Virus record (IMG/VR): IMGVR_UViG_3300010938_000950
Location: 1-64,000 of that record
Direction: 5' to 3' (one strand)
Length of the DNA stretch: 64,000 nt
The translations under genes and the position numbers were made by a program. Position 1 is the first letter of the stretch. Every line of letters begins with the position of its first letter. The notes beneath the pieces are model-generated. The model searched no databases. It saw only the letters and a program-made list of their open reading frames with translations, and was not told the origin of the DNA. This document shows, piece after piece, positions 742 to 60,427 of this stretch.

Positions 742-1575
742 ATGCCTGTAAACGATAGACCCATAGAAAATACAATTTTATATAAAGAAGATGGTACGGC
801 TGTTTTAGTAGGTAGCCGAGGAGAAATTTATACTTCTGATTTATCCATTGCAGTTGGTCGTGGTTTAGCTACTGGAACATCTGGTATGGCTAAAGGATAT
901 GCATCTGTAAGCTCTACTGCTATTGTGCCGGTTAGAGCTACCACTTATACAGAACCAACATCCGCTGCTGCCCGTGAATTAATTTCTTCTAGTACACAAG
1001 ATGATGCAACTCCAGGAGGCACAGGAACTCGAAGAGTAAGAATTACATACTATGACAACAATATGTTGGGGCCATATATTGAAGATATTGATCTAAATGG
1101 TACTACGGCCGTTACTACCGTAGCTACAAATATCAGGTTTATAGAAAAAATGGAAAGTTTAATTGTCGGGTCCAACGGAACTAATGTGGGCACTATTACG
1201 ATACGAAATACGGGAGCAGGAGCTACTATCGGAACTATCGCAGCAAGTGACGGGTGTACGCATTGGGCACATCATTATGTAGCAGATGGCTACACTTCAT
1301 TTATTCAATCGCTAACCACAGGCATTATCGACAATGGATTGTTAGGATCTATTAGTTGTAGTATGTTTTTGCGCGCAGCTCTTCCTCTTACTGCAAACTC
1401 TTTTGAAAAGCAAATTACATTTTCATTTAGACAGCAAGGAAATCAGCCATCACAAACTCATAATGTTGTTAATGGCTTATGGGTTAGAGGTCCGGCCAGA
1501 ATAACTCTTTATGCCCGTGATGACAATACTACTGCTGGTACTGTGCACGGCGGCTTTACTTTCTATGATGTATAA
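742..1575 (+). CDS. Hypothetical protein, paralog 2 of tandem trio
   Basis: 277 aa ORF starting immediately after upstream TAA; same conserved core as neighbours. Confidence 0.85.
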   Translation: MPVNDRPIENTILYKEDGTAVLVGSRGEIYTSDLSIAVGRGLATGTSGMAKGYASVSSTAIVPVRATTYTEPTSAAARELISSSTQDDATPGGTGTRRVRITYYDNNMLGPYIEDIDLNGTTAVTTVATNIRFIEKMESLIVGSNGTNVGTITIRNTGAGATIGTIAASDGCTHWAHHYVADGYTSFIQSLTTGIIDNGLLGSISCSMFLRAALPLTANSFEKQITFSFRQQGNQPSQTHNVVNGLWVRGPARITLYARDDNTTAGTVHGGFTFYDV

Positions 1576-1584
1576 GGTGGTTTG

Positions 1585-6100: not shown

Positions 6101-6102
6101 AG

Positions 6103-7105: not shown

Positions 7106-10100
7106 ATGGCTGAACAGTTTGCAAATAATGCAGCCTCCACATTAAATGGAGCAATTAACAATTCTACTACCACCATTGTCGTAGCTACTGGTGAAGGATC
7201 CCGTTTTCCTTCAGTTGGTAACTTTAGATTAATGATTGGTTTAGATCCATTTACTGCGGAAATAGTTTTAGCCACTGCTCGTTCTGGTGACACTATCACA
7301 GTTGTTCGTGGACAAGAGGGGACTTCAGCCCAATCGTGGGGTAATGGCACTTCAGTTACCCATATTGTTACTGCTGGTGCAATTGAGCAAATTAGAACAC
7401 AATTTGTTACCTCTGGCGCTGAAATATACACCACTAATACAGTTTCAATTGATCCAAATGGAACCGTAGCTTCTTCTCATGGTGATGGCACTAGCAAACT
7501 ATATGTCAATGGCAATGTACAAGCTCTTAGATATTCTGCTGGTGAAATGGCAGCAGTTACTCAAGGTTTTGGATATGTATCCGATACTTTACAATCATTC
7601 GTTGTTCCTACTGGCGTAACTAGTCTTAAAGTAAAGATGTGGGGGCCTGGTGGTGGTACTGGCAGCTATAGTGCCTCTGGTGGAGGTGGCCCAGGTGGAT
7701 ATACGACTGGATTTCTCTCAGTAACACCAGGAGAAACACTATTATTAGCTGTTGGTAGTGGTGGTAAAAAACCAGTTTCTAGTACGGGTAATGGTGGTTT
7801 GGGAGGATGGCCCGGTGGTGGATTTGGTACTAGAGGAGATGCTTCTGGAGGCGGTGGAGGTGGTTTAACTGGAATTTTCACTAGCTCTATGACACAAGCA
7901 AATGCTCTTATGATTGCTGGTGGAGGTGGTGGATCCACAGGATTTGGTAATTTTGGTGCTGGTGGTGGAGGAGGTTTGACCGGAGGTTCTGGTACTAGCG
8001 GCTCTGGAGCTGGAGGTAGCCAAGTCGCCGGTGGTCTTGGAGGTGGCACCTTAAATACTTCTCCATCTGTTGGTACTGCGCTTGCGGGAGGAACTGCTTT
8101 TACCGATAATACTACTTCACAAACCAATGACTGTGGTGGTGGTGGCTCTGGATATTGGGGCGGCGGTGCTGGTCAAGGTGACGGCCGTGCTGGTGGAGGT
8201 GGTTCTGGTTTTATACATGCTACTCGTGTTTCTAGCGGGTCTACTACTACTGGAAATAATGCTGTAAGTGGTAACGCTCAGACACTACCGCCTAATACAA
8301 CGGATCCTAATTATATAGCGGGCGTGGGAGTTGGTGCAGCGACAGGTTTAACTGGTGTTGGTAATGATGGTGGTGATGGCTACATAGTCTTCCAATGGGG
8401 CGGCCAAACATCTATGGATTTAGATTCCATTAATTTTAGCAACGGCTCTATTATTAGTATTCCTGATAATCATGTTTCTATAGCTTCGGGAGGTGGTAAT
8501 GTTGTTTTATCTCCTGGAAGTAGCTCAATTACTTTACAAAGTGCTACTGATTTTATCTTATCTACACTTACAGATACTAGATTTGATATTAGTTCATCAC
8601 AAAAATTCAAAATGTATTCTTCAGGAGCAGTTGTTATTGGTACAGCAACCAATAATGATACGTCTGCTGAGGCTCAAGCCGGTATTACCGGACCAATAAT
8701 TAATATCAGCTCATCTACAGGATCTATAAGTACAACTACAAATCAAGCGACTATTTTTAATCAATCGGGAGCACTTTACTTACAAGGCAATACTGAAGTT
8801 AGATTTGCTACAAGTACGTCTACTAAGGGGTATTTTGATGTAAATGGTATTTTTAGAGCCGGACCAAGTGCCTCTTCTACGGCTACACTACAAGGTGCCA
8901 CATGGCCAATCACTGGTACCGATTATTTTTGGATGTATAATGCTAGTGGTAGTTCATGGGCCGAAATAGTTGCTGGTGGTTCTGTTAATAGATCAGCCAT
9001 TCAAGTTCTTAATAATGCAACTAGTAATACTTGTGGTGTATCATTATTTGGTGCGGGCACTGGACATGGCACGGCAGAATATGCTGGTAATGGAACTATT
9101 GAGCAATCTGGCAATAGTACATCAGCATTAGTATTTACGAAGAGAAATGGAACAGATGGTTTAAGTTTTGCATCAACTGGTGCTATTTGGCAATCTGGCG
9201 CTTGGACTATTGGTAGAGCAACTAATAATGATACCTCCTCAGAAGCACAGGCCGGATTAACTGGACCACTTTTAAATATTACACAAACTACTGGTGGAAC
9301 TCTTACTACAGTTGCCAATCAATCTTTATTATATAATTCTGCCGGGGTTAATATTTCACAGGGCCATTCCGGTGTAAGACAAATTGTAGGAACAACTACA
9401 ATTTTAGATACTACATCTACTGGAACTACAATTACCGGATTAGTTACTGCAACTAATAAATTTGTTGTGGGTACATCTGGGCCTACCATTACTCAGGGTA
9501 CTGGTGTTCCAGCAACATCTGAAAATAATGGATCTATCTTCTTGAGAACTGATGGTACGGCCAGTACAGGAATATATACGAGACAAGGTGGAGCTTGGTA
9601 TTCTATTAATTCAAGATACACTCCAACGGATAGTAATACTATAATTAACTGGAAGTTTGATGAAACTGCGGCCCCATATGTAAATTCTGGTTCGGGCTCG
9701 TCTCTCTCATTAACTACTTTTACTGGAACGCCAGTTAGTATAACTGGTTTATTTAACAAAGGTCTTGGGTGTTCGCTTTCAACTATTACGACTGGTAATA
9801 CCTCTGTTAATGAGCCCACTGGTAATTCATTGACCGTTTCTGCTTGGGTTAAAGCTCGTAGTTATGCAACATTTGCTACTGTTATTAATAAGGCTTATAG
9901 AAATGACAATACATGGTCATCGCCTTTCGTAGCTCTTTATTTAAGTTTAACTAATTCTGGCGATGGATCATGGGGTCCAGCAATTACTACAACCGGAGGA
10001 GTATTAACACAACCAGCAATAGGAGGCGCATTTAGGGTGCCATTACATGTTTGGACGCTATTGTCATATACATATGATGGAACAACTTTGCGCTCATATA

Positions 10101-10306
10101 TTAATGGTGCACTTGCACATAGCGTAAATGTTTCTGGATCTATAGATTATGGCACTCATGGGCCTTGGGATGTTGGTGGTGTTTCTAATGCTAGTGTTGG
10201 ACAATTCTGGGATGGACACATAGATGATGTTAGAGTTGAAAATGTAGTGCGCTCTCAAGCTTATTTTGAAGAAATGTATAAGAGAGGAATTGGTCAACCA
10301 GACTAA
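7106..10306 (+). CDS. Tail fibre / receptor-binding protein with glycine-rich domain and C-terminal LamG-like (concanavalin A) domain
   Basis: N-terminal EIV..TARSGDT.TVVRGQEGT anchor; VKMWGPGGG...GGGGG domain at about 7640-8400; C-terminal TVSAWVK...WTLLSYTYDGTTLRSYING...GHIDDVRV. Confidence 0.8.
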   Translation: MAEQFANNAASTLNGAINNSTTTIVVATGEGSRFPSVGNFRLMIGLDPFTAEIVLATARSGDTITVVRGQEGTSAQSWGNGTSVTHIVTAGAIEQIRTQFVTSGAEIYTTNTVSIDPNGTVASSHGDGTSKLYVNGNVQALRYSAGEMAAVTQGFGYVSDTLQSFVVPTGVTSLKVKMWGPGGGTGSYSASGGGGPGGYTTGFLSVTPGETLLLAVGSGGKKPVSSTGNGGLGGWPGGGFGTRGDASGGGGGGLTGIFTSSMTQANALMIAGGGGGSTGFGNFGAGGGGGLTGGSGTSGSGAGGSQVAGGLGGGTLNTSPSVGTALAGGTAFTDNTTSQTNDCGGGGSGYWGGGAGQGDGRAGGGGSGFIHATRVSSGSTTTGNNAVSGNAQTLPPNTTDPNYIAGVGVGAATGLTGVGNDGGDGYIVFQWGGQTSMDLDSINFSNGSIISIPDNHVSIASGGGNVVLSPGSSSITLQSATDFILSTLTDTRFDISSSQKFKMYSSGAVVIGTATNNDTSAEAQAGITGPIINISSSTGSISTTTNQATIFNQSGALYLQGNTEVRFATSTSTKGYFDVNGIFRAGPSASSTATLQGATWPITGTDYFWMYNASGSSWAEIVAGGSVNRSAIQVLNNATSNTCGVSLFGAGTGHGTAEYAGNGTIEQSGNSTSALVFTKRNGTDGLSFASTGAIWQSGAWTIGRATNNDTSSEAQAGLTGPLLNITQTTGGTLTTVANQSLLYNSAGVNISQGHSGVRQIVGTTTILDTTSTGTTITGLVTATNKFVVGTSGPTITQGTGVPATSENNGSIFLRTDGTASTGIYTRQGGAWYSINSRYTPTDSNTIINWKFDETAAPYVNSGSGSSLSLTTFTGTPVSITGLFNKGLGCSLSTITTGNTSVNEPTGNSLTVSAWVKARSYATFATVINKAYRNDNTWSSPFVALYLSLTNSGDGSWGPAITTTGGVLTQPAIGGAFRVPLHVWTLLSYTYDGTTLRSYINGALAHSVNVSGSIDYGTHGPWDVGGVSNASVGQFWDGHIDDVRVENVVRSQAYFEEMYKRGIGQPD

Positions 10307-11649: not shown

Positions 11650-12018
11650 ATGTCAACTCTGCTCTATTATTTCCCAGGACAAAAAGCTACTATTTTCCTA
11701 GAAACTAAGGACGGTTATGGCCAGCGCGGGGATAACAACACGTCATTTGATGGTTATTTAACTCCAGTTATTACAAGAGTTATCTTTCCTGACCTGTCTC
11801 TAGCAGCCGGGTTCCCCCAACCAATGGTTAAGTTAGATACAGGTCTTTATTTCTTCCAATTTACCGTTCCAGTTGGTGGAAAATCTGTTGGTAGTTTTCT
11901 GATAGATGTTACGTATAATAATCCGGGAAATCCTCTAGATTTGACTCAAACGTATCAATTAGTAGTAACGGCTCCGTTCGGTAATTACGGGGTTACAACC
12001 TTTGGGAGTGCAACGTGA
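11650..12018 (+). CDS. Small Ig-like putative virion protein
   Basis: 122 aa beta-rich (TGLYFFQFTVP...GSFLIDVTY); AAGGA SD; two DGY motifs. Confidence 0.6.
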   Translation: MSTLLYYFPGQKATIFLETKDGYGQRGDNNTSFDGYLTPVITRVIFPDLSLAAGFPQPMVKLDTGLYFFQFTVPVGGKSVGSFLIDVTYNNPGNPLDLTQTYQLVVTAPFGNYGVTTFGSAT

Positions 12019-12914
12019 CCATTAAGGCTCGCGGTGAGTTAATTGACGTCACAGATCAAGTTAATTTAACCGTACAATTTAAAGATCAGTTCGGGAACCC
12101 CATTGACACGGATTCCTTCCCGACAATTTCTATTGTTCAGCCAAGTGGCTTAGTAGCACTAGCTCCAACTTCAGCCGGCGTTACACGTGTATCAACCGGC
12201 AAATATTCTTTTGTTTTTACGGTTCCAATCAATGGCCCCTATGGGGCTTTTAATGATATTTGGGTTGGGTACATCAATGGATTTCGTGTTGAAACTACTT
12301 TTACATTTGTAGTCGCACATACACAAATTCCAAGCATAAATTCAGATGGTTATGTACATTTAGGTGATGATCCTGGTTTTAGTTATTCGCAATGTGCCAC
12401 TATTAATATCAATAAGCTAATAAAATCTCTTAAAGCAAGATTAAACAGTGCCGGTAAAGCAAAATCATCGGATGCCTATGGAAACACTATCTATGTCGAT
12501 TGTGATATTTTCTCTATTGCTATGCTTACAACTTTTCTCGCTACTGCTTTATGGGATTTCAACCAAGTACCTTACTTCACATTCTTCAAATTCGATGATG
12601 ATGATTTCGTTGATCAGTTTGGTGAAATTCTGGTAGAGGGAGCCACTCTATACGCATTAGCATCTAAAGCATTAATTGAGCGTGGTCGTGAATTTCAAAT
12701 CACGGATAACGGTTTGAGCTTTAATCCTCCAACAGTTTCTGAATTGATGCAAACGCAATATAGCACACTACTATCTCACTACTGGGAAAAACTAAAGTAC
12801 ATAAAGAATAGCTTACGTCCAGCACCAAGAGGATTGGGCGTGTTCAGCATGAATAGTGCTATTAATCCGGCTTTTGCTAGATTGAGACACTTAAGAGCCA
12901 GAAGATTGATATGA
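12015..12914 (+). CDS. Putative head-tail adaptor/neck protein with N-terminal Ig-like domain
   Basis: GTG start overlapping upstream TGA, GGAG SD; beta-rich N-half (TGKYSFVFTVP), helical C-half; position upstream of tail genes. Confidence 0.5.
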   Translation: MTIKARGELIDVTDQVNLTVQFKDQFGNPIDTDSFPTISIVQPSGLVALAPTSAGVTRVSTGKYSFVFTVPINGPYGAFNDIWVGYINGFRVETTFTFVVAHTQIPSINSDGYVHLGDDPGFSYSQCATININKLIKSLKARLNSAGKAKSSDAYGNTIYVDCDIFSIAMLTTFLATALWDFNQVPYFTFFKFDDDDFVDQFGEILVEGATLYALASKALIERGREFQITDNGLSFNPPTVSELMQTQYSTLLSHYWEKLKYIKNSLRPAPRGLGVFSMNSAINPAFARLRHLRARRLI

Positions 12915-28987: not shown

Positions 28988-29015
28988 TACTTTCTAATAT
29001 CCTTAGACTACTTAA

Positions 29016-29056: not shown

Positions 29057-29071
29057 ATTTGTGGAGTTATA

Positions 29072-30111: not shown

Positions 30112-30114
30112 TAA

Positions 30115-32472: not shown

Positions 32473-32482
32473 GGATACTTAA

Positions 32483-49245: not shown

Positions 49246-52200
49246 CAACACTCAGAATCGTTAATGTAGTAATAAACAGCAGCACAAGTATAGATGTTTC
49301 ATTTACTGAAACGTTAACTGGTAATTTGTTGCCTGCAAATGCTTCTATTATTTCTCAAACGGAAAATATACCCGATTCTGAAGTATTAGAAGTGTCAATA
49401 ACTGGTAATGTATTTTCTATCACATGTCAGCCGCTAACTCCATATGCTGCTTATTATCTGCAGTTTCAATCAACAGATACACATCCATTTACTTCAATAA
49501 ATGGCGATGTAAAACTTTCTGAAGATGGTGTTTCTAATAGGATTATTATTACTGGCCCTCTGCCAGCAGATAATCCTGTTAATGATTATTTACAATCATT
49601 TTATCAGAATAACATATATAAAGCCAGCGATAGTACAACAATTATAAACAAATATCTACAATCTATTGCTGTGAATTTTTCAAAGGCATTATATGATATT
49701 AGACAGCTTGCCAATGAAAATTACCTCTCTTTTACGGTAGTAGACGAATTTCACACTAAAGGTGAAACTCCCTTTGAAAGATTATATGAAGAAGCGGCCT
49801 ATGAAGTATTTAGAGTAGGATTCGGTGCTACTTCTGCTCCAGTACCTAATACTTTCATTTTTGATAGTTTCCCTTCATACCCTGTTACATTACAAAGACA
49901 ATCTGCTGTAGAAATTATTAAACCATCTTCTAATGATGCTAGTGGCACTTTTGACATCAATAATTTAATTTTTAATCTTAGTAACAAGCCAGTTACCAAA
50001 GTTAATAAGATTACTTTTACTCTGACCACTACTAATCCAGTTTTTGAATATGATATTTCTAAATTAGGATATCAAATATTAGATTCTAGATTTGATCAAG
50101 ACTATGCATCTAGCTATCTTTTGTTAGAAAATAATCAAGTAAAAATAAATGAATCTATATTGGAGGACCCTGATTTTTCGTTGGATCAAATTTTTCATAT
50201 AATGGTCGAATATGAATATAAGGGCCTAGGAATTCAAATTGATCCTGACTCTGTAAGTACATATACTACATTACAGTCGGTTAGAGAGGTTTTGCCTCCT
50301 ATCATAAATATATTTAGTTTGGAACATGCACCAATTACTGATATTAATAATACAATTCCAAAGATTGGTGGTGTTACATTTATCGATCCTAATTCTGGCA
50401 CTGGAATGCCTCATCCGGCATTTCTAACAGAAATACCATTCAGTTTGAGTGCGTTACCATCTTCTCCTGGCGTATACTCTATTGATTATACAACAGGCAC
50501 TGTATACGTATATGGAGAAAATAGCAATAATGATGGCACCGGCCCTTCTCCACCGCTGGCAACTTACTATTACAAATTTACATTCACGCCAGAAATTGAT
50601 TATGTCTATGATAGTGATTTAAGAGAGATAGTTGCATTACCTTTGGGTAACTTAGTAAATCAACCGGGTACAATTTCATTTAACTATGAACAAGTTTTAG
50701 TACCAGGTGTAGATTACGAAGCTAATACTCATAAAGAATCAATAAATGAAAGAGTTGGAAATCAATTAACCGCTCTCAACTCGCTGAGAACTGCTAACTC
50801 GCCTATTACAAATGTTTTCCAGGTTTTTAATGAAACTTCTGGTGAAATCTATCTTATAGATAGATGGAATGAAAATACTGTTTATTTTAGATTTAACAAG
50901 CCGCCTAGAGTTTTACAGCGAACTGGTGAAGTAGCCACATTTGAAACTGTTACCAACGAACTATTAGGAATAAATACCACTAGCACAAACGCTAACAGTC
51001 TACGTATTTTTACTATATTTTTGGCCAATAATACAATTATTAATTCATCACAAGATGGAATTGGCGCTTCTTTTAACACCAGCGTAACATTTACAAATGG
51101 AAATGTTTTTGTTACAGAAATGTGGTATGATCAGGAGTTTAGCTCAACTACAAATATTAACGGTCTCAAAAATATAGGTGAGTATACGATCGACTATAAA
51201 AATGGAATTGTATATGTTGCAGTTTCAAATAATCAAAGTAATGATATTGGTACGGTAACGTACAAGAAAAATAGTATTACACCAAACTTTCCTCACGTAA
51301 TTAGTGTTGATGACCTATACTATCGTATAAGTATTTTAAACCCCAAAAATAAACAATTTTCTTACATTTCATTTGAAGATGGAGCTATAGTTCCAGACGG
51401 CTTAGAAGTTTCTGATGAGGCATTTTTAAATGGTGTTATAGGCGCACCATATCAGATTTTTCAAAATCAAGTTGGCGCTTTTGTAGATTCTACATTTGTG
51501 CCCGGAGTTACTAACGTTGTTAAATTTGTTAGAAGCGTTTATGAGTTTAATGACTTATCTAATAGTTCTAATCCTATTAATTTTGGATTTGTAAGTACTG
51601 CAAATAATTTTAACATCACTGTAGGTACGATAAACAAGCAATCTTTCGAAACTGTACAGTTTGATGGAATGAATTATTTCATTTTACTTAATGAAAATAT
51701 TCCTTATTTATCGCCAGGTATAAATTACACTTTTAATGTAACCAGAACATCAGACTCTCAATCGTTGTGGAACGGATCGGGAACTATTGTTCCTGGTAAT
51801 CCATTAAAACTCATTCTTCCAGGAATTGGTTCCCCACAAATAGGCGATTTAGTTAGCGTTACTTATTCGTTTTCTATTATACCATTGCAAAGAGTAATAG
51901 TAGACTACAATAAAGGTGATTTCTTTGTTGATTATACTTATGTTGCGGATGAAATTTTAGTTAGTTATGAATATGGTGATAATGTAATCGATTTCCGCAA
52001 GAATCTTAATTTACCTACAGGATCTGATTATTATGTATCATATAAAGTAGGTGCCTTACGAGATGCTCTTCTCAAAAATTTTGGAACTCTAGTAAATGTT
52101 CCAACCCTTTCTAATTTTGATCTTAGTTTAAATAGAGAAAGATATCGTGAAGCTTTACAGGCCGCCTTGTCATCGTTTATTCAAGGACCAACTGTTGCTG

Positions 52201-55200
52201 CTATTAAAAACATCGGGCAAATAATTACTCACGTAGAGCCAGAGGTAATTGAGTCTGCTTTTGAAATTTGGTCATTAGGTAGTAGCTTACTATTTCCTAT
52301 TGGCGTAGAAACCACCGGAGATTTCCAATTATTACCAGCTCATTATGGTAATGGTGTATTACTAGACCAACCAGATCAAACCATTACTATGCCGATAAAT
52401 TCTAATCTAAGATTAGAAGAGGGCACATTTGAAACATGGATTCTTCCTCAGTGGAATGGAATCGACAATGATGCCATTTTGAATTTTAATATTACTAGAG
52501 ATGGATACGCTATTGATCCATTCAGAGTATTTATTGGTGGCTCTGAGTATCATCCAACTCTAGATTCCAAAAAACAATTTACTCTGGATAAAAAGTCAAA
52601 TGTTACTGGCCGCCCTAACAAAAATAAAGACGGTATCTTCATATTTTATGACAAAGATATTTCAGGTAGCTTCTATCGTTGGTATGTGGAAGTTATCGAT
52701 GGATATGTGGCTCCTAACAATCATACTTACCAACTCCAAATTTTCTCCACGGGTAAATTCTATGATGTTAAATCTATTAGTCCAATTAAGCCGGCTAATA
52801 TGACTACATTTACAGGTACCAGCAAAGTTAATTTAACTTTGCGTCCAAGAATAGATGGATATGGTATCGATGAAGGAATCACATTCGTATCTGACATTGA
52901 ACATTACATTTTAGATTTTGGCAAAACCAAAGATTCTAGTAGGCTATCTATTTTCAAAGATGTGAGCGGTTACATAAACTTCCGAGTTTATGATAGAGAT
53001 CATAAGATGTGGAATATTAGCGCCGATGTCTCTTCCTGGAGAGTTAATGTTCCTCACATGATTGCTGCATCATGGAAACTGAACACAAGAAATAATCGTG
53101 ATGAAATGCACTTATTTATTGATGGTTTGGAAGTTCCAAATATCATTAAATATGGACAAAAACTACAACCATATCTACACGAAAAATTCAGAACTGTTAA
53201 CCCAGAAGAAATAGTGGGCCTTGCAACTCGTGATATTGTAGGCTCTAACGATTTATCTACTACTGCTGGTTCATCGTTGGTTACATCCAGTATTAATTTT
53301 AGTCAGTTTAATATTTTTGTGGGAGATACCATTTTAATTAAAGAGGAAGGATTCGACCCGCTAGGCTACACAATTATTGGTATTAATGGTCAAGAGCTAA
53401 CTTTGAATACTATATTGCCAATTACAATGAGTGGCGGTGAATTTTCCATTAATCAAACTGATTATTTTGTTTCGTCGGACATCAATATCGTGCCAAATAT
53501 TGCGGTAACAACTATCCACACTTTCGTTGAAGGTATGGATCTTATTACTACTGCAGGCTCTGCAACAGTTACCTCCCCAGGCACTAATTTTACTACACTT
53601 AATGTTAAACCAGGATTTTTGCTTAGAATAGATAATTCTTCATTTGCACTTACTTATAGTATTCTACAAGTAAGTGGAAACTCTCTTACTATTACGGATT
53701 CGGCCCCGATCAGTTTGTCAGGAGCTACTTTCCAAGTATATTCTAATACAGAAAATGAAATACCTGGAGTTAGAGCACTCAAGCCATCTTACAGCATTAG
53801 TCAAGACAATAATTTTAATAATATTTTAACTATTTCAAATGATGTTTTTGCTAACGATCTAATCCTTATAAGAACATTAGGCTTAAATTACAGAGATGTA
53901 AAAAAGCAATACTATGTTTGGAGTTCGCAATTAGAAAATGTTTTGCAGACTCAATTGCCGCCGCCAATTAATCTAGATGAAGCCGCAATCACCAGAATAA
54001 TAACTCCAACGACAGCTATTGGCCCATCAAATTCTACTTTAATGAGTGGGGTATTCGTATCAAACTATCTTCCAACTGCTGCACCATCAAATGCTCAAAT
54101 TGGTAGAACTATTCAAGCTACAATTAGTGGTACCAATGTAGATTTTTCTACGCCAGTTCAAGTAACTATTAATGGTGTTTCTGGAATAAATACTATTAGT
54201 GAAACGATTACATTTACAGATTATGGCACGTTAGATTTTACAAATACATTTGTCTCACTGAATTATATGTGGGTAAATGTTAAGCCACTAAATTCTAGCA
54301 AAAATGCATTAGCTGTCGAATTAAGAGAAAAATATCCAATTACTCACAGTGAGTCTAGTGGATTTGTTCCTGTTGTTAAATACAGCTATCACATTAATGG
54401 TGGATATAATCTTTCTGGCGATGGAACAAACAATATTGTAACAGATCTAAATAATACATTTAGTGCATTAGATATTGGTAATACTCTGATCATACACACT
54501 CCTCCTACTGTTGCTGGCTTCTACAAGGTTATTGGTTTATCATCTGATAGACATTCTTTGATTATAGAATCTACCGCAGCATCATTTCCGGTACCACTTC
54601 CAGCTTTTACTGGTGCAAAATATCAAGTACTTAATACCACTCAATATCGTAGTGGATTACAAAATGGATTTTTTACATTAGAAGCTAGTGTACTACCAAG
54701 CCAGCAGTATTTCTTAGATCAAGGATTTTATGAGTTAGAATATTCTACATATGCTAGAATTAAGTTTGATTCATTAAATGGTAAAATGTATTTTGGTAGT
54801 GATTTCCAGGGCAATAACCAAGCTAATGCTATTATGGATCACGCTACTATTTATTCTATTATGTTAACAGACACTAGAGTAGGAGAAGTAGTTTCTCTTA
54901 ATAAGCGTTCCGTAACTAAAGATTACAATACACTAAAGCCATTTAAACCAGATTCAAATACTCTGGTCTTGATAGATTTTGATAGTTTTCCATTCGACAA
55001 TATTGCTAAATTCTATGCTAGCACTAATAATGATCATAAACATTTCCAGTCCGATTTTACTGTTAATGATAATTTCAGTGAAAGTATAGTAATTCTAGAT
55101 GAGCCAATTGTATTATCTAACGATGGAATTTTGGATGCTAGAAATCAGGGAACCATTGAATTCTGGATGAGCCCTCTTTTTGATACAGCTAATGATCCAA

Positions 55201-56393
55201 ATCTAAGATACTATTTTGATGCATATGGTGCTGTCAAAGAAACGGTCACCAGCGTTAATAATGTGTCAGTTAAAATCTCATCACCAGCATCTAAGATACT
55301 CAGTGTAACTTTAGAGGCTGGAGATCCTAAGATCGACTATTTTGCTGGTGGTAAATTAGAGATTGATACTCAGCAAGCAATACAAGAAGATACTGTAGTT
55401 GCCGGCACATCTGTTCTTATTGTTTCCCAACCTATACTACAAGTTATTTCTGTGAAAGTAATTGGAGACTTTACAGAAAAGGATTATTTTGCAGGTGGGT
55501 CGGTGGGCGCAGACCGAAAGACTGTTTTTCTAGGAACGGCATTACCACAACCAAATATGCAAGTTCTTGTTACGTATCAAACTACGAATAATAACAATGT
55601 TACTATCAATACTCAAGTTATTCGATTAAATAGAAAACTGCCCGCCCAAAATTCTAAGGTTGTTGTAACATATTTGCCAACGGGACTCCAAGGTGACCGC
55701 ATCTCAATTTATAAGGATCTATACGGCTATATAAATTTCCAAATCAGAGCATCTGGGTTTGATTACGTAGTACGTGGCCCAACTCGCTGGGCCAAGAATA
55801 CTTGGCACCGTGTCAAGGCTAGCTATAAAATTAATGGAAGTGTTGGCAGTGATGAAATGCGTCTATTCTTGGATGGATATCAATATACGGATGTTTTATA
55901 CGGCCAAGAATTACAATTTGGTAAATTCCCAATGGTTTATGGTTCAGTTACCGTAGGAGATGGTTATGGTTTAATTGGAAGCATTCCATTTAAAGATCCA
56001 ATTAACATTTTAAATATTGGGGCAGATTATCAAAAAAATAATCCAATCTTTACTTTGCTGGATAATTTTAGGGTTAGCAATATGTCTAGGCCAATTTATG
56101 CTCCATATGGTGAACCACTAGATGCTAACTTTAGTAATAATTTAAGTACTGTTTTCCCGGTTACCAAAGACCTATATACTACTTTGTTGTTAGATTTTGA
56201 CAGGTTAAATGCCCTAAATACCAATTTTGCTACATTGATTAATAGAGCAACCGGCGCATTTGATTTTACTGTAAATATCTTCGATTCTTTTGGTATAGTA
56301 AGTAGTAGCGCTAAAGTTAAAGAAGTACTTGAAAACCTTATTAATATCCTGAAGCCAGCTAACTCCAGGGTGTTTATCAAGTATATTACCTGA
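49242..56393 (+). CDS. Giant baseplate wedge protein (gpI/gp7-like) with LamG-like domains
   Basis: ATGA overlap with J; RERYREAL...QGPTVAAIK and ENLINILKPANSRVFIKY wedge-like motifs; GTFETWI, GTIEFWM, WHRVKASY..MRLFLDG LamG-like motifs. Confidence 0.7.
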   Translation: MTTLRIVNVVINSSTSIDVSFTETLTGNLLPANASIISQTENIPDSEVLEVSITGNVFSITCQPLTPYAAYYLQFQSTDTHPFTSINGDVKLSEDGVSNRIIITGPLPADNPVNDYLQSFYQNNIYKASDSTTIINKYLQSIAVNFSKALYDIRQLANENYLSFTVVDEFHTKGETPFERLYEEAAYEVFRVGFGATSAPVPNTFIFDSFPSYPVTLQRQSAVEIIKPSSNDASGTFDINNLIFNLSNKPVTKVNKITFTLTTTNPVFEYDISKLGYQILDSRFDQDYASSYLLLENNQVKINESILEDPDFSLDQIFHIMVEYEYKGLGIQIDPDSVSTYTTLQSVREVLPPIINIFSLEHAPITDINNTIPKIGGVTFIDPNSGTGMPHPAFLTEIPFSLSALPSSPGVYSIDYTTGTVYVYGENSNNDGTGPSPPLATYYYKFTFTPEIDYVYDSDLREIVALPLGNLVNQPGTISFNYEQVLVPGVDYEANTHKESINERVGNQLTALNSLRTANSPITNVFQVFNETSGEIYLIDRWNENTVYFRFNKPPRVLQRTGEVATFETVTNELLGINTTSTNANSLRIFTIFLANNTIINSSQDGIGASFNTSVTFTNGNVFVTEMWYDQEFSSTTNINGLKNIGEYTIDYKNGIVYVAVSNNQSNDIGTVTYKKNSITPNFPHVISVDDLYYRISILNPKNKQFSYISFEDGAIVPDGLEVSDEAFLNGVIGAPYQIFQNQVGAFVDSTFVPGVTNVVKFVRSVYEFNDLSNSSNPINFGFVSTANNFNITVGTINKQSFETVQFDGMNYFILLNENIPYLSPGINYTFNVTRTSDSQSLWNGSGTIVPGNPLKLILPGIGSPQIGDLVSVTYSFSIIPLQRVIVDYNKGDFFVDYTYVADEILVSYEYGDNVIDFRKNLNLPTGSDYYVSYKVGALRDALLKNFGTLVNVPTLSNFDLSLNRERYREALQAALSSFIQGPTVAAIKNIGQIITHVEPEVIESAFEIWSLGSSLLFPIGVETTGDFQLLPAHYGNGVLLDQPDQTITMPINSNLRLEEGTFETWILPQWNGIDNDAILNFNITRDGYAIDPFRVFIGGSEYHPTLDSKKQFTLDKKSNVTGRPNKNKDGIFIFYDKDISGSFYRWYVEVIDGYVAPNNHTYQLQIFSTGKFYDVKSISPIKPANMTTFTGTSKVNLTLRPRIDGYGIDEGITFVSDIEHYILDFGKTKDSSRLSIFKDVSGYINFRVYDRDHKMWNISADVSSWRVNVPHMIAASWKLNTRNNRDEMHLFIDGLEVPNIIKYGQKLQPYLHEKFRTVNPEEIVGLATRDIVGSNDLSTTAGSSLVTSSINFSQFNIFVGDTILIKEEGFDPLGYTIIGINGQELTLNTILPITMSGGEFSINQTDYFVSSDINIVPNIAVTTIHTFVEGMDLITTAGSATVTSPGTNFTTLNVKPGFLLRIDNSSFALTYSILQVSGNSLTITDSAPISLSGATFQVYSNTENEIPGVRALKPSYSISQDNNFNNILTISNDVFANDLILIRTLGLNYRDVKKQYYVWSSQLENVLQTQLPPPINLDEAAITRIITPTTAIGPSNSTLMSGVFVSNYLPTAAPSNAQIGRTIQATISGTNVDFSTPVQVTINGVSGINTISETITFTDYGTLDFTNTFVSLNYMWVNVKPLNSSKNALAVELREKYPITHSESSGFVPVVKYSYHINGGYNLSGDGTNNIVTDLNNTFSALDIGNTLIIHTPPTVAGFYKVIGLSSDRHSLIIESTAASFPVPLPAFTGAKYQVLNTTQYRSGLQNGFFTLEASVLPSQQYFLDQGFYELEYSTYARIKFDSLNGKMYFGSDFQGNNQANAIMDHATIYSIMLTDTRVGEVVSLNKRSVTKDYNTLKPFKPDSNTLVLIDFDSFPFDNIAKFYASTNNDHKHFQSDFTVNDNFSESIVILDEPIVLSNDGILDARNQGTIEFWMSPLFDTANDPNLRYYFDAYGAVKETVTSVNNVSVKISSPASKILSVTLEAGDPKIDYFAGGKLEIDTQQAIQEDTVVAGTSVLIVSQPILQVISVKVIGDFTEKDYFAGGSVGADRKTVFLGTALPQPNMQVLVTYQTTNNNNVTINTQVIRLNRKLPAQNSKVVVTYLPTGLQGDRISIYKDLYGYINFQIRASGFDYVVRGPTRWAKNTWHRVKASYKINGSVGSDEMRLFLDGYQYTDVLYGQELQFGKFPMVYGSVTVGDGYGLIGSIPFKDPINILNIGADYQKNNPIFTLLDNFRVSNMSRPIYAPYGEPLDANFSNNLSTVFPVTKDLYTTLLLDFDRLNALNTNFATLINRATGAFDFTVNIFDSFGIVSSSAKVKEVLENLINILKPANSRVFIKYIT

Positions 56394-56401: not shown

Positions 56402-59400
56402 ATGACAAAGCGAGCCCCCGTATCTATACAAAGACCAATTTGGTATGATGCCCAACAGGTAGATGAAACTGATCTGTCCTCTGAGCAAACAGCTAATGAT
56501 ACCATAGATGCTGCTATTATTAATAATCATGTTGGCGATGGAGTTCTTCCAGAAAATTTGGTAGCCAGAGTATTGTTTGATTCAAGTCAAGCGATAGGGT
56601 TTTTGGATGGTCTTCCAATACAAACACAAAATCAACCATCTGATAATAATTTTGGTAATCAGCTTTCTATATCTCTTACGGGCTCTAAAGCTTCAGGCCA
56701 TCGTACGATCAAAATTGGTATCATTGGTCTAGATTTTCAATCTAATCTACAGTTTGAAACTTTTTATTTTAAAAAGAATGAAACCCAAACAAGTCGCAAG
56801 CACTTTACTCAAATTTTAGTTTTACTATTTAATGATTTTATTGGCGATCCACAACTATCTTTCAATCTAGGCGGAAGAATTATCATTTCTGAAGCTTTAC
56901 CAATGACTGTGTCTAGAGACGTTGTAATGATTGCTCAAGACCAACAACCAAATTTATTCTTTAGAGATTTCTTTCTCGATCCATCTGTAAATACTGTTTC
57001 CGTAGAAGGTATGTTGCAAAACGCATTACCTCTCTATAATATAGATAGTTTAAATATCTTATCTTCCCCAGTTGATTTACTTCCAATTTTGAGTGGAGAT
57101 GTTACTACTCAAATTGGCCAAAAGTTTCAAGCAACAACTAACAGTGTTCAAAAGATTACATTGCTTTTGGCTGTTAGAAATCAAGTTGCGGGACAGCAAA
57201 ATAATTTAGTTTGGAATGGAGATATTGTTGTTAGCATTTATCCATTACAAACTAGTATAGATTGTCCAACAGATTTCTTACCAAATCTTCCGATAGATTT
57301 TTCACCATCTAATATTCCAATAGCACAAATTAGCTATAACTACAATAGTCTTCAGGATGCCGGTATAGTTTTGGATTCAGTTCCGCAACCAGTTGATTTT
57401 GTATTTAGCAATAGCCCAATTGCTGGCGGCAATGTCATGGTGCCCGGCCAATATTATGCATTAGCCATTAAACGTTCTGGCTCTGCTAACCAATGTGATA
57501 TTTTAGTTGCTACTGGTCAAAATCTAATAGATAATTCCAGAATTACCACTTTTACTGGAACACTATGGGTGGACATCCCAGATCAAGATTTATGGTTTGT
57601 AGTATGGACAGATGCTGCAAAAATATCTGACGGCCAAGCTTATGATCAGGGTCACGGTGTTACTATTCCTAAAACTACGCTGGATCCGACCACTCAATCC
57701 ACCATTGATAATGTATTTGGCGCAAAACAATTTGTAGGTAATGATGTATTTCGTGCGGTTCTCCAGGCCGTAACTGATGTTTCCGATCCTGTTCCAGATC
57801 AAAGAACTGGTAATCCAGTAGATTCTCGTCAGCAGTATGTTCCTCAAGTTACATTGATGAATACTATTGATATTGTTAATCTGGAAAAAACTTCCGAACC
57901 ACTAATTTTAGGAGCTATTTCCGATAAGAATATCAAATTCTTTGATACCAGCCAGCAAATTATTAACTCTACATTGTACAGTGCAACAATGGTTAGAGAT
58001 GAGATTGTTATTAGAGTAGTAGATGATCCAACTGATACTGTCAGATTTGATTTGGCTGTTAGTGGTTTAGCAACTAGTTTATTAAATGGCGATCTAGTGG
58101 GGGCCATAGTAAGACCCGATTCGGCGGCTCCATTTACAGCATATCGTATCGCTGATGCTAAATTATGTTCTATGATTCTCGGAGATGTCGATGGTAATGG
58201 AATCATAGACGAGAATGATTTAGCACTATTAAATACTTTTGTCGGCTATAATATGAATGTTGGCTTGCCACTTCATACTAATATTGTTACCGATGGTTAT
58301 TCTACTGTTGTACAAAATGGTTATCAAACTTTGACGCAACCATTTGCTAATTTGTTTGGTATTAGTTTTCAATTATTAAATCCAAATGATGGTTACGTGG
58401 TTGCTTCAGCTTCTGATGGTGTTTTAGTTGCCAATCCAAATGATCCGTCTTTGGCTCAATTTACTAGTGCAACCATACAATTTAATACTATCGTAGGTTT
58501 GAGTTCTTACAAACTAGTTATTTTAGATAGTGGTTCTATGGAAGCAGATTGGGGCGCTTGGAACATTGTTGCATTAGATTCTAGTTTGGATGTTCTTACA
58601 ATACAAAAGATTTATTTAACTGGTGATGTATTTGCTCAAATGATGCGAGCAGATATTAATGGCGATTTTGCTATCACTACAGCGGATGGTTATCTGTTAA
58701 ATAGCTATATCGATAGACTACCAAGTACTGCAATTCCTCCTGCTACATACCCAGCACCAAGCACCAATCCATATACTAAGATTGGTACACGATTTAATGT
58801 TATTAGATTAAGAGTAGAGAAGTTAGTAGATAGAACAGATGATTACACTGCCAATCCTGCTGACAGGGCTGATACAGTACATCCTCCACAAGATATCTTT
58901 ATAGGTGATGGTTATTTTGCTAGCCATGATTTTTATGCATCACCAATTCAAATATCTTTCACTAAACAGCTAATATGGGATCCATCTTTAGTTGTAACTA
59001 CTGCACATCCAAAATTAGTGCCTAGTGTATTTACTTCGGAAAATGGCGTAGTTCATAATGTATGTGAAATTGAAGGTATACAGTGTAATGTTTATCCGGT
59101 TCCGCAAACATTTGACCCTGGTAAAGTAGATTTCTTCGTTCCAAATAACCTTATCATTGGAGATGGAGAATTACAGAGGCCAGATGGATATTATTATAAA
59201 GTAGACTTTGAAGTTGGAACTATAGTTCTAGAAATCCCAGATGGTTTGTTTGGATCAGAAAGAACTATTGATATTATGAATGACTTTATTGCAGATTATA
59301 CTGGCAATGGAGCTACACGTCTCGGATTCCCGTCCATGAGATTCGCTGATTGTTCATATGTTCAAAGAGATGCTTTAGCAAAAGATCAAATAAGATTCTC

Positions 59401-60427
59401 GGTTTCTGTACAATCGTTCTCTCCAAATACTAATGGTTTGAGTCCAGACGGATACACTGGGGCCATTGTAGATGGTAAAATGGGTGTAAGCATAGATTTT
59501 GAAACCGGATTACTTACCTTAAACTTCACGAATTTGTATCAGGACGCTACTTTGCGTACTTTAAGTACAAAAGTACAGGTACATGTATTCTTGAAAAAAG
59601 GTGGATTTAATAACGAACCATTATTCGTAAATGCCACTAAAGTACAAAATATGCTCAGTCTAATAAGTGTATTTAGTGGTGCTAATGACGGCGGCCCATC
59701 TGCTTTGGTAGATTTAGGTAACGATGTGACTGGTATTTTACCAATTTTGAATGGTGGTACTGGTCTTAATGATGTCGGGCCATTTGGCACCGTTCTTACG
59801 AGTAATGGAAGTGGATTAAGTTATCAATTCGTTAATACATTACTTAATGTTATTCCATTCTCCACTGGTATTCCAGATGCTGATAAAGTACCAAAATTAG
59901 ATGGTTATGGATTCTTAGACCCAAGTTTTATGTACAAACAACCGATGTACATACCTATAGTTTCTGGTACATACTCTAATGATGGTTATACTCCAGCCGC
60001 AATCGGTGCCTGCATATTTAGATTTGATAGTTTCATATTAGAAGGTCTTGATTCTATCAAACTAGAATGCATTTTAGAAACAACTAACGTAGCTAGTGCG
60101 GCCGTAATTAGATTATATAATGTTAATACTAACAGCTACATATTACTAAATGGCATAAGCCCAACACTAACTACAAATAATGTTCAAGCAACTTATGTGG
60201 TTTCTCAAGACTTGAAATCACTGCTTTCTGCTGGTGCTACTAATTGGATTTATGAAGTTCATTTGAATGCCGATCCGGGTGGCAGCCTTGATACTGCTAT
60301 TTGTAAAATGGCTAGATTGGTTATGACTTATAATAATTTGACCTTGAACGGATCATCGGAAATAGCTCCTCCATTAGCTCATAGTTATAACTTTGTACCA
60401 TTCTTACCAAGCCCGACACCATCATAA
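56402..60427 (+). CDS. Large baseplate/fibre-attachment virion protein with two dockerin-like Ca-binding loops
   Basis: 1341 aa, last gene of structural block; GDVDGNGIIDENDLALL and ADINGDFAITTADGYLL; eight DGY motifs. Confidence 0.65.
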   Translation: MTKRAPVSIQRPIWYDAQQVDETDLSSEQTANDTIDAAIINNHVGDGVLPENLVARVLFDSSQAIGFLDGLPIQTQNQPSDNNFGNQLSISLTGSKASGHRTIKIGIIGLDFQSNLQFETFYFKKNETQTSRKHFTQILVLLFNDFIGDPQLSFNLGGRIIISEALPMTVSRDVVMIAQDQQPNLFFRDFFLDPSVNTVSVEGMLQNALPLYNIDSLNILSSPVDLLPILSGDVTTQIGQKFQATTNSVQKITLLLAVRNQVAGQQNNLVWNGDIVVSIYPLQTSIDCPTDFLPNLPIDFSPSNIPIAQISYNYNSLQDAGIVLDSVPQPVDFVFSNSPIAGGNVMVPGQYYALAIKRSGSANQCDILVATGQNLIDNSRITTFTGTLWVDIPDQDLWFVVWTDAAKISDGQAYDQGHGVTIPKTTLDPTTQSTIDNVFGAKQFVGNDVFRAVLQAVTDVSDPVPDQRTGNPVDSRQQYVPQVTLMNTIDIVNLEKTSEPLILGAISDKNIKFFDTSQQIINSTLYSATMVRDEIVIRVVDDPTDTVRFDLAVSGLATSLLNGDLVGAIVRPDSAAPFTAYRIADAKLCSMILGDVDGNGIIDENDLALLNTFVGYNMNVGLPLHTNIVTDGYSTVVQNGYQTLTQPFANLFGISFQLLNPNDGYVVASASDGVLVANPNDPSLAQFTSATIQFNTIVGLSSYKLVILDSGSMEADWGAWNIVALDSSLDVLTIQKIYLTGDVFAQMMRADINGDFAITTADGYLLNSYIDRLPSTAIPPATYPAPSTNPYTKIGTRFNVIRLRVEKLVDRTDDYTANPADRADTVHPPQDIFIGDGYFASHDFYASPIQISFTKQLIWDPSLVVTTAHPKLVPSVFTSENGVVHNVCEIEGIQCNVYPVPQTFDPGKVDFFVPNNLIIGDGELQRPDGYYYKVDFEVGTIVLEIPDGLFGSERTIDIMNDFIADYTGNGATRLGFPSMRFADCSYVQRDALAKDQIRFSVSVQSFSPNTNGLSPDGYTGAIVDGKMGVSIDFETGLLTLNFTNLYQDATLRTLSTKVQVHVFLKKGGFNNEPLFVNATKVQNMLSLISVFSGANDGGPSALVDLGNDVTGILPILNGGTGLNDVGPFGTVLTSNGSGLSYQFVNTLLNVIPFSTGIPDADKVPKLDGYGFLDPSFMYKQPMYIPIVSGTYSNDGYTPAAIGACIFRFDSFILEGLDSIKLECILETTNVASAAVIRLYNVNTNSYILLNGISPTLTTNNVQATYVVSQDLKSLLSAGATNWIYEVHLNADPGGSLDTAICKMARLVMTYNNLTLNGSSEIAPPLAHSYNFVPFLPSPTPS

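Follow-up and report, generated by a model that had tools for sequence, protein, structure and literature searches.

Gene content of the locus

In order to characterize the locus we examined a window of 64,000 nucleotides, which is the start of a 210-kb IMG/VR contig (IMGVR_UViG_3300010938_000950) from an uncultured megaphage clade. The window encodes, on the + strand, a long series of neck, tail, baseplate and fibre genes followed by genes for glycosyltransferases, and the tripeptide Asp-Gly-Tyr (DGY) is found 35 times in the encoded proteins, the first time at nucleotide 1285 and the last time at 59981-59989. The sequence-only reading, which first drew attention to this tripeptide, had counted about 35 motifs by eye, and every count that it gave for an individual gene is exact.

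The first site (1285..1293) lies within an ORF of unknown nature encoding 277 amino acids (742-1575), for which only one ortholog was retrieved. A 1066-amino acid protein with LamG and ALK-type Gly-rich domains (7106..10306) carries one DGY (residue 424, nucleotide 8375). It is followed by a 122-amino acid Ig-like neck protein (11650..12018), which is the densest carrier with two DGY (residues 21 and 34), and by a 299-amino acid head-completion-like neck protein (12015..12914) with one (residue 111); the resemblance of these two proteins to Ig-like and head-completion domains is only a lead. A 525-amino acid protein with a weak fn3 match (14458..16035) has two DGY (residues 182 and 223), a 589-amino acid virion protein with DUF5907 repeats (16077..17846) has one (residue 562), a 1512-amino acid protein (18442..22980) has six (residues 275, 344, 454, 618, 622 and 821), and a 364-amino acid glycine-rich protein (22990..24084) has one (residue 313). 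The next carriers are a 275-amino acid tail terminator/gp15-like protein (24483..25310; residue 134), whose fold is again only a lead, and the 941-amino acid tail sheath (25450..28275; residue 419). The sheath was assigned to phrog_279, and a Foldseek search of its model confirmed the sheath fold by matches to the T4, phi812 and KP1 sheaths.

No DGY is found in the block of inner tail genes that follows (28304..38487), which includes the tube (28304), 29072, 29788, the tape measure (30115), 32483 and the hub-like 33436. The last of these has five DG dipeptides and 38497 has six, and none of them is followed by Tyr. Further along, a 731-amino acid baseplate-region protein (40613..42808) has two DGY (residues 449 and 636), and a 1364-amino acid baseplate J (gp6-like) protein (45151..49245) has three (residues 572, 887 and 929), all of which lie outside the conserved J domain (residues 68-281). 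A 2383-amino acid fibre/baseplate protein (49242..56393) has five (residues 1087, 1153, 1205, 2211 and 2240), and a 1341-amino acid distal fibre (56402..60427) has eight (residues 631-1194); in the latter protein 8 of 17 DG dipeptides are followed by Tyr. The fibre genes are followed by a GT4-family glycosyltransferase (61220..62365), which contains no DGY, and a GT2-family glycosyltransferase with a GT-A fold (62323..63054).

Enrichment of the DGY tripeptide

In order to determine whether 35 occurrences could be due to chance, we calculated the expectation from the composition of each protein and obtained 3.12 (Poisson P about 1e-24); shuffling of residues within proteins 5000 times gave a mean of 3.13, a standard deviation of 1.74 and a maximum of 11. 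DGY is the most enriched of all 8000 tripeptides, the next being GGG at P about 3e-8. The observation made in the sequence-only reading is therefore confirmed. Closely related tripeptides are at chance: DGF (5 observed, 4.5 expected), NGY (4 and 4.1), EGY (2 and 1.8), DAY (3 and 2.6) and YGD, and DGW is not enriched either. The same reading had pointed to DAYG variants, which do occur (in 12015, 14458 and 49242), but because DAY is at chance we rejected DAYG as a variant of the motif.

The signal is at the level of protein. The DNA pattern GAYGGNTAY occurs 35 times on the + strand, always in frame 0 and never in frames 1 or 2, and four times on the - strand; ten synonymous variants are present, and codon use within DGY equals the background of the same genes. 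We therefore rejected a DNA- or RNA-level signal and a codon effect. Nor does the motif belong to one repeated fold, because 237 non-redundant contexts collected across the clade carry no flanking consensus (0.04-0.16 bit per flanking position).

The enrichment does not vanish when unrelated myoviruses are examined, which had been named beforehand as an outcome that would count against the motif. Phage G has 2 DGY with 1.8 expected, phiKZ has 5 with 2.2 expected, and T4 structural genes have 10 with 2.7 expected (7 once three Seg paralogs are removed), so that these controls are at 1-3.7-fold (at most about 3-fold in the corrected comparison) compared with about 11-19-fold here. DG is a common turn, T4 shows a mild excess, and weak structural models place some sites at hairpin turns, all of which could point to an ordinary structural preference for a D-G beta-turn followed by an aromatic residue. 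However, a generic hairpin or tyrosine-corner motif would be expected to tolerate Asn in place of Asp and Phe in place of Tyr and to show a domain-specific flanking pattern, none of which is observed, and homologous proteins of the DGY-free lineage described below fold without any DGY. This explanation, together with a shared fold and compositional or DNA-level artefacts, is very unlikely and is already largely refuted by these results.

Conservation across the clade

We extended the analysis to orthologs from the clade. DGY-bearing orthogroups contain 917 DGY compared with 49.1 expected (18.7-fold), while no other tripeptide exceeds 4.6-fold. Orthogroups of individual carriers show the same excess: 91 observed and 2.45 expected in 43 sequences for 11650, 40 and 2.5 for 12015, 124 and 5.0 for 14458, 179 and 10.8 for 18442, 76 and 5.0 for 49242, and 85 and 4.0 for 56402. 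Individual sites are far more conserved than their flanks, although there are also many lineage-specific gains. In the terminator the conservation of D, G and Y is 0.97, 0.93 and 0.95, respectively, compared with 0.45 for the flanks in 61 orthologs, and at sheath site 419 it is 0.99, 1.00 and 0.92 compared with 0.48. Sites 275, 454 and 622 of 18442 are kept in 32-38 of 43 orthologs, the site of 16077 in 6 of 7 orthologs, and site 762 of 56402 is invariant in 14 orthologs. Where the Tyr is lost, Phe makes up only 18% of replacements, compared with 52% at other conserved Tyr columns, and therefore the hydroxyl group seems to matter.

The motif is found in neck, terminator, sheath, baseplate and fibre proteins, and its position within them is uneven. 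In an alignment of 67 sheaths, all 134 occurrences, in 25 columns, lie in the insertion domains (residues 41-635) and none lie in the core. DGY columns are located near indels in 86% of cases compared with a background of 66% (P = 4e-5), which suggests loops. Models of these proteins were poor: the AlphaFold model of the C-terminal part of 56402 with all eight sites had a pLDDT of 41, and the sheath model, with a pLDDT of 67, places DGY419 inside a long predicted strand of an insertion domain, so that the exposed beta-turns proposed in the sequence-only reading remain a conjecture.

In contrast, no DGY was found in 47-75 orthologs each of the tube (0 in 63 sequences of its orthogroup), 29072 and 32483, and the tape measure has at most two in 36 sequences (none after trimming). 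The inner tail block has 1 DGY compared with 16.9 expected over 291 sequences, which is the 0.7th percentile of comparable tripeptides. Our first estimates of depletion (0 compared with 9.4 expected, and about 5 compared with 35) partly depended on the choice of gene sets and on the relatedness of sequences, and we therefore recalibrated them against all tripeptides on sets defined in advance. Enzymes, replication genes and inner tail genes together have 6 DGY compared with 37.5 expected, which is the 0.8th percentile of comparable tripeptides, while DGF is in excess in the same proteins (88 compared with 46). Depletion in the non-virion module alone is not significant once calibrated for relatedness (4 compared with 18.4, 9th percentile).

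One lineage nested within the clade (P0125, the DGY-free lineage L134) has no DGY in 15 genes; every conserved site is replaced, including all six sites of 18442, and no new motif appears. Other than this lineage, 118 of 119 sheath homologs have at least one DGY; further sheaths without DGY (P0137, P0130 and P0154) are known only from short contigs or from protein sequence. No gene stands out as present in all DGY-positive loci and absent from the DGY-free lineage: 22990 and 24085 are missing from it, but they are also missing from most DGY-positive relatives.

No cultured relatives of this phage were found. A megablast search returned nothing, and tblastn with the sheath returned only matches of 29-31% identity over about 16% of the query, in phage G and Eggerthella LE2-3. 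A second, distant clade also carries DGY-rich fibres (10 DGY compared with 0.27 expected), which are encoded, together with TubZ, next to RmlA and RmlC.

The sugar gene cassette next to the fibre genes

The last fibre gene is followed by a cassette of sugar-related genes, which comprises GT4, one or two GT2 genes (GT2 and GT2b), a gene for a 333-amino acid protein of unknown nature, and a gene for a predicted dTDP-glucose 4,6-dehydratase (RmlB). The GT4 gene follows the last fibre gene in every locus that spans the junction, and GT4, the 333-amino acid protein and RmlB are present in nearly all of these loci, while some DGY-positive relatives lack both GT2 genes. GT4 is a highly conserved core gene (more than 120 clusters at 71% identity or higher) with an intact EX7E motif (residues 272-280); among cultured phages it has only matches of 22-23% identity, in Streptomyces and Microcystis phages. 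RmlB scores 351 bits to TIGR01181, just under the cut-off of 365 bits. The 333-amino acid protein and the product of 60511 have no match in Pfam, NCBIfam, PDB or the Atlas. An Fpg gene is located inside the cassette in this genome. In the second clade, whose members are on short contigs or are absent from IMG/VR, no glycosyltransferase was seen on the short contigs available.

A possible role of the DGY motif

The strictness of the motif, its concerted loss in one lineage and its depletion elsewhere fit a motif read by a trans-acting factor, as a sequon or docking motif would be. The best explanation, which we consider possible (probability about 0.4), is that DGY is a self-contained, sequon-like recognition tag read inside the infected cell, most likely by an enzyme that modifies the Tyr hydroxyl. 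In this view the phage would place the tag in surface loops of the proteins that form the outside of the neck and tail, namely neck Ig-like proteins, the tail terminator, the outer sheath domains, the peripheral part of the baseplate wedge and the long fibres, and would keep it out of proteins that are buried (tube, tape measure and hub) or that work as enzymes. The best candidate for the reader is the cassette described above, which would coat the tail exterior with a glycan containing a 6-deoxyhexose. The tripeptide code itself, its strictness, conservation and topology, its concerted loss in one lineage and its synteny with sugar genes are established by our analysis, while the existence of a reader, its action on Tyr, any covalent modification, exposure of the Tyr and the identity of the reader with the cassette are inferred. 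The interpretation offered in the sequence-only reading, that DGY marks exposed beta-turns that are modified, possibly by GT4 and GT2, or that bind a decoration protein, is thus partly supported.

The link to the glycosyltransferases rests on synteny only, within clades that all carry both features, and is therefore confounded by descent; the one DGY-free lineage is a singleton on a 21.5-kb contig that does not reach the glycosyltransferase region. Additionally, glycosyltransferase clusters in phages can also serve modification of DNA or of the host surface, and the very strong positional conservation of the sites is more than a simple glycan coat would need.

Several other explanations should be considered. 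The motif could be an intrinsic surface element with no reader in the cell, such that an exposed Asp-Gly-Tyr turn provides weak multivalent binding to a host glycan or a metal, or stabilizes the particle, and is lost when a lineage changes its host or habitat. Asp plus an aromatic residue is a typical sugar-contacting pair, no writer has been demonstrated, and the restriction to outward-facing domains, the conservation of each site and a concerted loss on a long branch, which could reflect a host switch, are all compatible with this possibility. However, a tripeptide without any flanking consensus is unlikely to form a binding site on its own, DGW and DGF are not enriched, and avoidance in inner tail and enzyme proteins, with DGF used instead, is not expected if the motif matters only outside the cell; we regard this explanation as unlikely, though it is the strongest of the alternatives. 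A non-covalent docking tag bound by a common decoration, cement or assembly protein that coats or assembles the tail exterior draws on the same facts that point to a trans-acting reader, but it is less likely still, because protein-protein docking normally needs more than three residues and a defined context is absent, because up to 8-10 sites per fibre are irregularly spaced, and because no gene shows the matching distribution. Finally, a strict short motif avoided in non-target proteins is what a protease site could produce, but cleavage at eight sites in one fibre, within the folded outer domains of the sheath and in the terminator would fragment essential structural proteins, and no protease gene was found in the 81 kb examined, which makes processing very improbable.

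We found no report of such a motif in the literature on DGY or Asp-Gly-Tyr motifs, including those of phages and tail fibres. A more far-reaching possibility, which is doubtful but compatible with the evidence, is that DGY is the sequon of a previously unknown cytoplasmic, Tyr-directed protein modification system of giant phages, which would coat the whole tail exterior, would be written by the conserved GT4 cassette or by a writer not yet seen, and would be purged from all non-target phage proteins; this would be the first O-Tyr sequon and the first proteome-wide address code described in a virus of bacteria. If DGY is a modification sequon, it would define the first consensus for tyrosine-linked protein modification and would show that giant phages chemically coat their tails by means of a simple, portable three-residue tag, which could be useful for engineering and could affect how these phages meet hosts, defences and the environment. 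Even without a known reader, a strict tripeptide that is enriched about 19-fold across hundreds of unrelated sequence contexts, conserved site by site, avoided elsewhere and lost all at once in one lineage is unusual, and it gives a directly testable handle on a phage clade that cannot yet be grown.

Comparison with known glycosylation systems

Glycosylation of phage virions has precedent in mycobacteriophages (Freeman et al. 2023, cited in PMC12582341), where the phage encodes its own cytoplasmic glycosyltransferases next to structural genes and virion surface proteins are the presumed targets. The location of GT4, GT2, GT2b and RmlB directly after the last fibre gene resembles this arrangement. 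Glycans in mycobacteriophages reportedly sit on Ser/Thr-rich C-terminal stretches of the capsid and tail tube, and no short sequon is known there, whereas here the tube has no motif, the tag is a strict D-G-Y, and the putative targets would be the sheath, neck and fibres (the capsid gene lies outside the region examined).

Short glycosylation sequons, such as N-X-S/T, the bacterial D/E-X-N-X-S/T and the D-S/T-A/I/L/V/M/T of Bacteroidota, are likewise linear codes of three to five residues with one modifiable residue, which tolerate any flanks, sit on exposed loops and are gained and lost among relatives. DGY shares with them a short motif containing a modifiable residue and independence of flanking sequence, but the acceptor here would be Tyr, for which no sequon is known, and the sites are much more positionally conserved. 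Those systems act at a membrane, except for the cytoplasmic NGT/HMW1C enzymes.

Tyr is an established O-glycan acceptor in bacterial S-layer proteins, where the glycans have rhamnose adaptors and the systems include rml genes and GT4-family enzymes (PMC2943079). S-layer glycans are built on a lipid carrier and transferred outside the membrane by an oligosaccharyltransferase, while phage tails assemble in the cytoplasm; no such enzyme or DGY consensus is reported there. We found no oligosaccharyltransferase, flippase or initiating phosphotransferase among the genes of contig positions 1-81 kb.

Giant viruses of eukaryotes (chlorovirus PBCV-1 with Vp54, and Mimivirus with its fibrils) carry their own nucleotide-sugar 4,6-dehydratase and several glycosyltransferases and glycosylate outer fibrils in the cytoplasm, and PBCV-1 uses a non-canonical sequon; their linkages are of N- or Ser/Thr-type and no DGY motif is known in them. 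In arginine rhamnosylation of EF-P by EarP (mentioned in PMC11611912), a soluble GT-B enzyme uses a dTDP-6-deoxyhexose to modify one residue at the tip of a beta-hairpin. EarP has a single substrate, an Arg acceptor and belongs to a different glycosyltransferase family, while the GT4 encoded here keeps the canonical EX7E motif.

Enrichment of the Asp-Gly-Tyr tripeptide

In order to test whether the tripeptide Asp-Gly-Tyr (DGY) is overrepresented, we translated the 43 plausible ORFs of the window (20,740 aa) and obtained 35 occurrences, exactly the number that the sequence-only reading had counted gene by gene. Per-protein amino acid composition predicts 3.12 occurrences, and 5000 shuffles of residues within proteins gave a mean of 3.13, a standard deviation of 1.74 and a maximum of 11. 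Among all 8000 tripeptides DGY is the extreme outlier (Poisson P about 1e-24), whereas the runner-up, GGG, is at about 3e-8. The motif is very sharply defined; its single-residue neighbors are all at chance: DGF was observed 5 times with 4.5 expected, DGW 1 with 0.8, NGY 4 with 4.1, EGY 2 with 1.8, DAY 3 with 2.6, DSY 5 with 3.3, and YGD 3 with 3.1. The corresponding DNA pattern, GAYGGNTAY, occurs 35 times on the + strand, always in frame 0 and never in frames 1 or 2, and 4 times on the - strand. Ten synonymous versions occur, and codon use inside the motif equals that of the same genes overall; the signal therefore lies in the protein. DAYG, which the sequence-only reading proposed as a variant, does exist in these proteins but carries no statistical weight. 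The enrichment itself is thus confirmed, and it is much stronger and broader than could be seen from the sequence alone.

Genomic context

The window covers positions 1-64000 of IMGVR_UViG_3300010938_000950, a 209.8-kb contig. Relatives are found on contigs of 340-490 kb, and therefore we assign the sequence to an uncultured megaphage clade, which has no near relative among 50,697 deposited phage genomes. The identifiable genes start with a patatin-like phospholipase (3418-4278, +; Pfam E = 4.6e-30), which lies just upstream of the structural genes, is conserved in 24 relatives and has no DGY. It is followed by an HNH endonuclease (4684), a gp80-type fibre domain (6621), and a 1066-aa protein (7106-10306, +) that combines an ALK/LTK-type glycine-rich domain (17.7% Gly) with a C-terminal LamG/concanavalin-like domain. 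A second Gly-rich protein lies at 22990-24084 (23% Gly, Gly_rich_2). Ig-like and head-completion-like neck proteins are encoded at 11650 and 12015, although these folds are leads only. Encoded on the opposite strand inside the neck/tail module (13225-13842, -) is a 205-aa 2H phosphoesterase of the 2'-5' RNA ligase superfamily, with a weak match to the anti-CBASS protein Acb1; it is conserved in 22 relatives and is a candidate cyclic-nucleotide-degrading counter-defence gene. A gp15-like tail terminator (24483) and the sheath (25450) are followed by the tube and tape-measure block (28304-33439), a 1683-aa hub-like protein (33436), a gp25-like protein (44710), a baseplate J protein (45151) and two giant fibre proteins (49242, 56402).

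Next come two glycosyltransferases, GT4 (61220) and GT2 (62323), and an Fpg/Nei DNA glycosylase (63051-63896, +). The GT2 ORF, with a TTG start as listed, overlaps the 3' end of GT4 by 43 nt (62323-62365), and its true start may be further downstream. Beyond the window the same contig continues with a 333-aa protein of unknown function, a second GT2 and a dTDP-glucose 4,6-dehydratase (RmlB; 351 bits to TIGR01181, for which the cut-off is 365). Directly after the sugar genes is a TubZ/PhuZ-like tubulin (contig 66994-68352, corresponding to 15775-17133 of the retrieved locus L079), and then a GH25 lysozyme, a UvsW helicase, DnaC- and DnaB-like proteins, a sigma factor, ribonucleotide reductase and PhoH.

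Distribution of DGY across the clade

In order to determine whether the pattern is conserved, we extracted about 180 loci from relatives (sheath identity 48-100%) and sorted their ORFs into orthologous groups of the window's genes. The groups fall into two classes. DGY-rich groups exceed expectation 13-37 times: 91 observed with 2.45 expected for 11650, 40 with 2.5 for 12015, 124 with 5.0 for 14458, 179 with 10.8 for 18442, 50 with 3.3 for the terminator (24483), 139 with 9.9 for the sheath (25450), 76 with 5.0 for 49242, and 85 with 4.0 for 56402. DGY-poor groups include the tube (28304; 0 observed with 2.1 expected), the tape measure (30115; 0 with 1.7), 32483 (0 with 2.6), the hub-like protein (33436; 1 with 9.2), GT4 (61220; 0 with 1.65), the helicase (0 with 3.5), ribonucleotide reductase (0 with 2.2) and the patatin (3418; 0 with 1.15). 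Pooled, the rich groups hold 917 DGY with 49.1 expected (18.7x), while the next most enriched tripeptide reaches 4.6x. Additionally, in loci L142-L191 from relatives, orthologs of the 118-aa product of 4309-4665 carry 26 DGY with 0.76 expected, although the window's own copy has none; this protein may be a paralog of the Ig-like protein 11650.

The sequence-only reading had named disappearance of the enrichment against unrelated myoviruses as an observation that would refute it. We examined such controls and found 2 DGY with 1.8 expected in the tail module of phage G, 5 with 2.2 in phiKZ, 10 with 2.7 in the structural region of T4, and 0 with 0.6 in the T4 long fibres. Three of the ten T4 occurrences (5295, 32142 and 37138 of the T4 locus) belong to the conserved DGY(L/M)GSG stretch of the paralogous Seg GIY-YIG homing endonucleases, which inflates the apparent excess in T4. 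The enrichment does not disappear in this comparison and is specific to the group studied here.

Properties of individual sites

After removal of related contexts, 237 distinct DGY contexts remain, and each of the 12 positions on either side carries only 0.04-0.16 bit. There is no extended motif and no shared fold, and we consider a generic structural preference or an artefact to be a very unlikely source of the enrichment. Individual sites are under strong purifying selection. Sheath site 419 is conserved at D 0.99, G 1.00 and Y 0.92, with 0.48 for its flanks; terminator site 134 is conserved at 0.97, 0.93 and 0.95, with 0.45 for its flanks; and site 762 of 56402 is invariant. Many further sites are lineage-specific gains, with 25 DGY columns in the sheath and 46 in 18442. 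Where the Tyr is lost it is replaced by almost anything: Phe accounts for 18% of replacements, whereas it accounts for 52% at other conserved Tyr columns of the same alignments. This suggests that the hydroxyl matters, not the aromatic ring.

In 67 distinct sheaths, all 134 DGY occurrences (25 columns) lie in the insertion domains, residues 41-635, and none lie in the conserved N- and C-terminal core, although 24% would be expected there. In contractile sheaths the core forms the inner layer and the inserted domains form the outer surface. DGY columns also lie within four columns of an indel in 86% of cases, in comparison with 66% for all columns (P = 4e-5), and in the baseplate J protein the three sites lie outside the conserved J domain. 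The sequence-only reading placed the motif in exposed beta-turns, which is plausible but not shown: the predicted structure of the fibre was poor (pLDDT 41), and in the sheath model DGY419 is inside a long predicted strand of an insertion domain.

Probable avoidance of DGY in other proteins

Initial estimates of depletion were inflated by the relatedness of the sequences, and part of the effect came from defining void groups by their DGY content. Therefore, we recalibrated depletion on sets fixed in advance and compared DGY with all tripeptides of similar expectation in the same sequences. The non-virion module has 4 DGY with 18.4 expected (9th percentile, not significant alone), the inner tail block has 1 with 16.9 expected (0.7th percentile), and the union of these sets with upstream enzymes has 6 with 37.5 expected (0.8th percentile). 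In that same union DGF is overrepresented (88 with 46.3 expected), so that the DG-aromatic niche is used, but with Phe, whereas in control phages DGY outnumbers DGF (19 and 7, respectively). We regard avoidance as probable but not proven.

Concerted loss and a second DGY-positive clade

A profile search of 1.8 billion representative proteins with the sheath showed that DGY enrichment extends to distant homologs and fades in the most distant ones, and that one full-length sheath, P0125, has no DGY. In a phylogenetic tree P0125 is nested inside the query's own clade, on a long branch, as the sister of a sheath with five DGY (support 97/93). Its 21.5-kb contig (loci L134/L138) is syntenic with the window but has zero DGY in all 15 genes. 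Every conserved site in the orthologs of 18442, the terminator and the sheath is substituted or deleted, and no other tripeptide has become enriched. The ortholog of the 1512-aa gene 18442 is split there into two genes (1025 and 731 aa; L134 493-5777), genes 22990 and 24085 are absent, and three minus-strand genes are inserted after the tape measure. Of 119 further sheath homologs, 118 have at least one DGY. The homologous proteins evidently work without the motif; its value therefore depends on something else, either in the genome or in the host. An intrinsic micro-motif acting outside the cell is a possible alternative to a tag read within it, although we consider it doubtful.

Conversely, a distant clade, whose TubZ is 34% identical to that of the contig studied here, is also DGY-positive. 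In locus L192 of this clade the gene order is RmlA, RmlC (208 bits, above cut-off) and TubZ, followed by a 1784-aa protein with 10 DGY (0.27 expected) and a 1184-aa protein with 3, while the helicase, DnaC and DnaB that follow have none. Four JGI contigs show the same picture. The pairing of sugar genes with a tubulin is kept in this second clade (L192, L194-L198). In some of its members (contigs of ERZ27247916 and ERZ27247687) the UvsW-type helicase next to the DGY-rich protein carries an intein with a LAGLIDADG endonuclease.

A candidate glycosylation cassette and interpretation of the motif

We identify the most likely mechanism, with a probability of about 0.4, as a sequon-like tag that is read in the infected cell, probably by modification of the Tyr. 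The enrichment, its strict definition, the conservation of sites, their position in the sheath, the loss in one lineage and the proximity to sugar genes are results of the analysis, whereas the existence of a reader, the modification of Tyr and the identity of the enzyme responsible are inferred. The interpretation offered by the sequence-only reading, a motif that is modified, possibly by the neighboring GT4 and GT2, or that binds a decoration protein, is supported in part. A non-covalent docking tag seems unlikely, and a protease site very unlikely.

Assignment of the fibre-adjacent GT cassette as the writer is more tentative than the tag itself and rather doubtful on present evidence. This evidence is synteny within lineages that share both traits, the GT region of the DGY-free lineage not being among the loci compared. 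Phage-encoded dTDP-6-deoxyhexose genes sit next to DGY-rich fibre genes in both clades, which fits a virus-encoded cytoplasmic glycosylation of the tail exterior. Precedents are virion glycosylation in mycobacteriophages (cited in PMC12582341) and Tyr-linked, rhamnose-containing S-layer glycans made with rml genes and GT4 enzymes (PMC2943079). A literature search found no report of a DGY motif of this kind. If the favored explanation holds, it would be a previously unreported form of sequon-directed glycosylation and of phage virion glycosylation; if the reader turns out to be something else, it lies further from anything known.

In every retrieved locus that spans the junction, GT4 follows the last fibre gene, and GT4, the 333-aa protein and RmlB are present in nearly all of these loci. 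GT4 is unusually conserved, with more than 120 clusters at 71% identity or higher, and it keeps the EX7E motif of GT4 enzymes. The GT2 genes are missing in one sub-lineage that is still DGY-positive. The Fpg/Nei DNA glycosylase encoded inside the cassette is absent from many relatives and is probably incidental to it.
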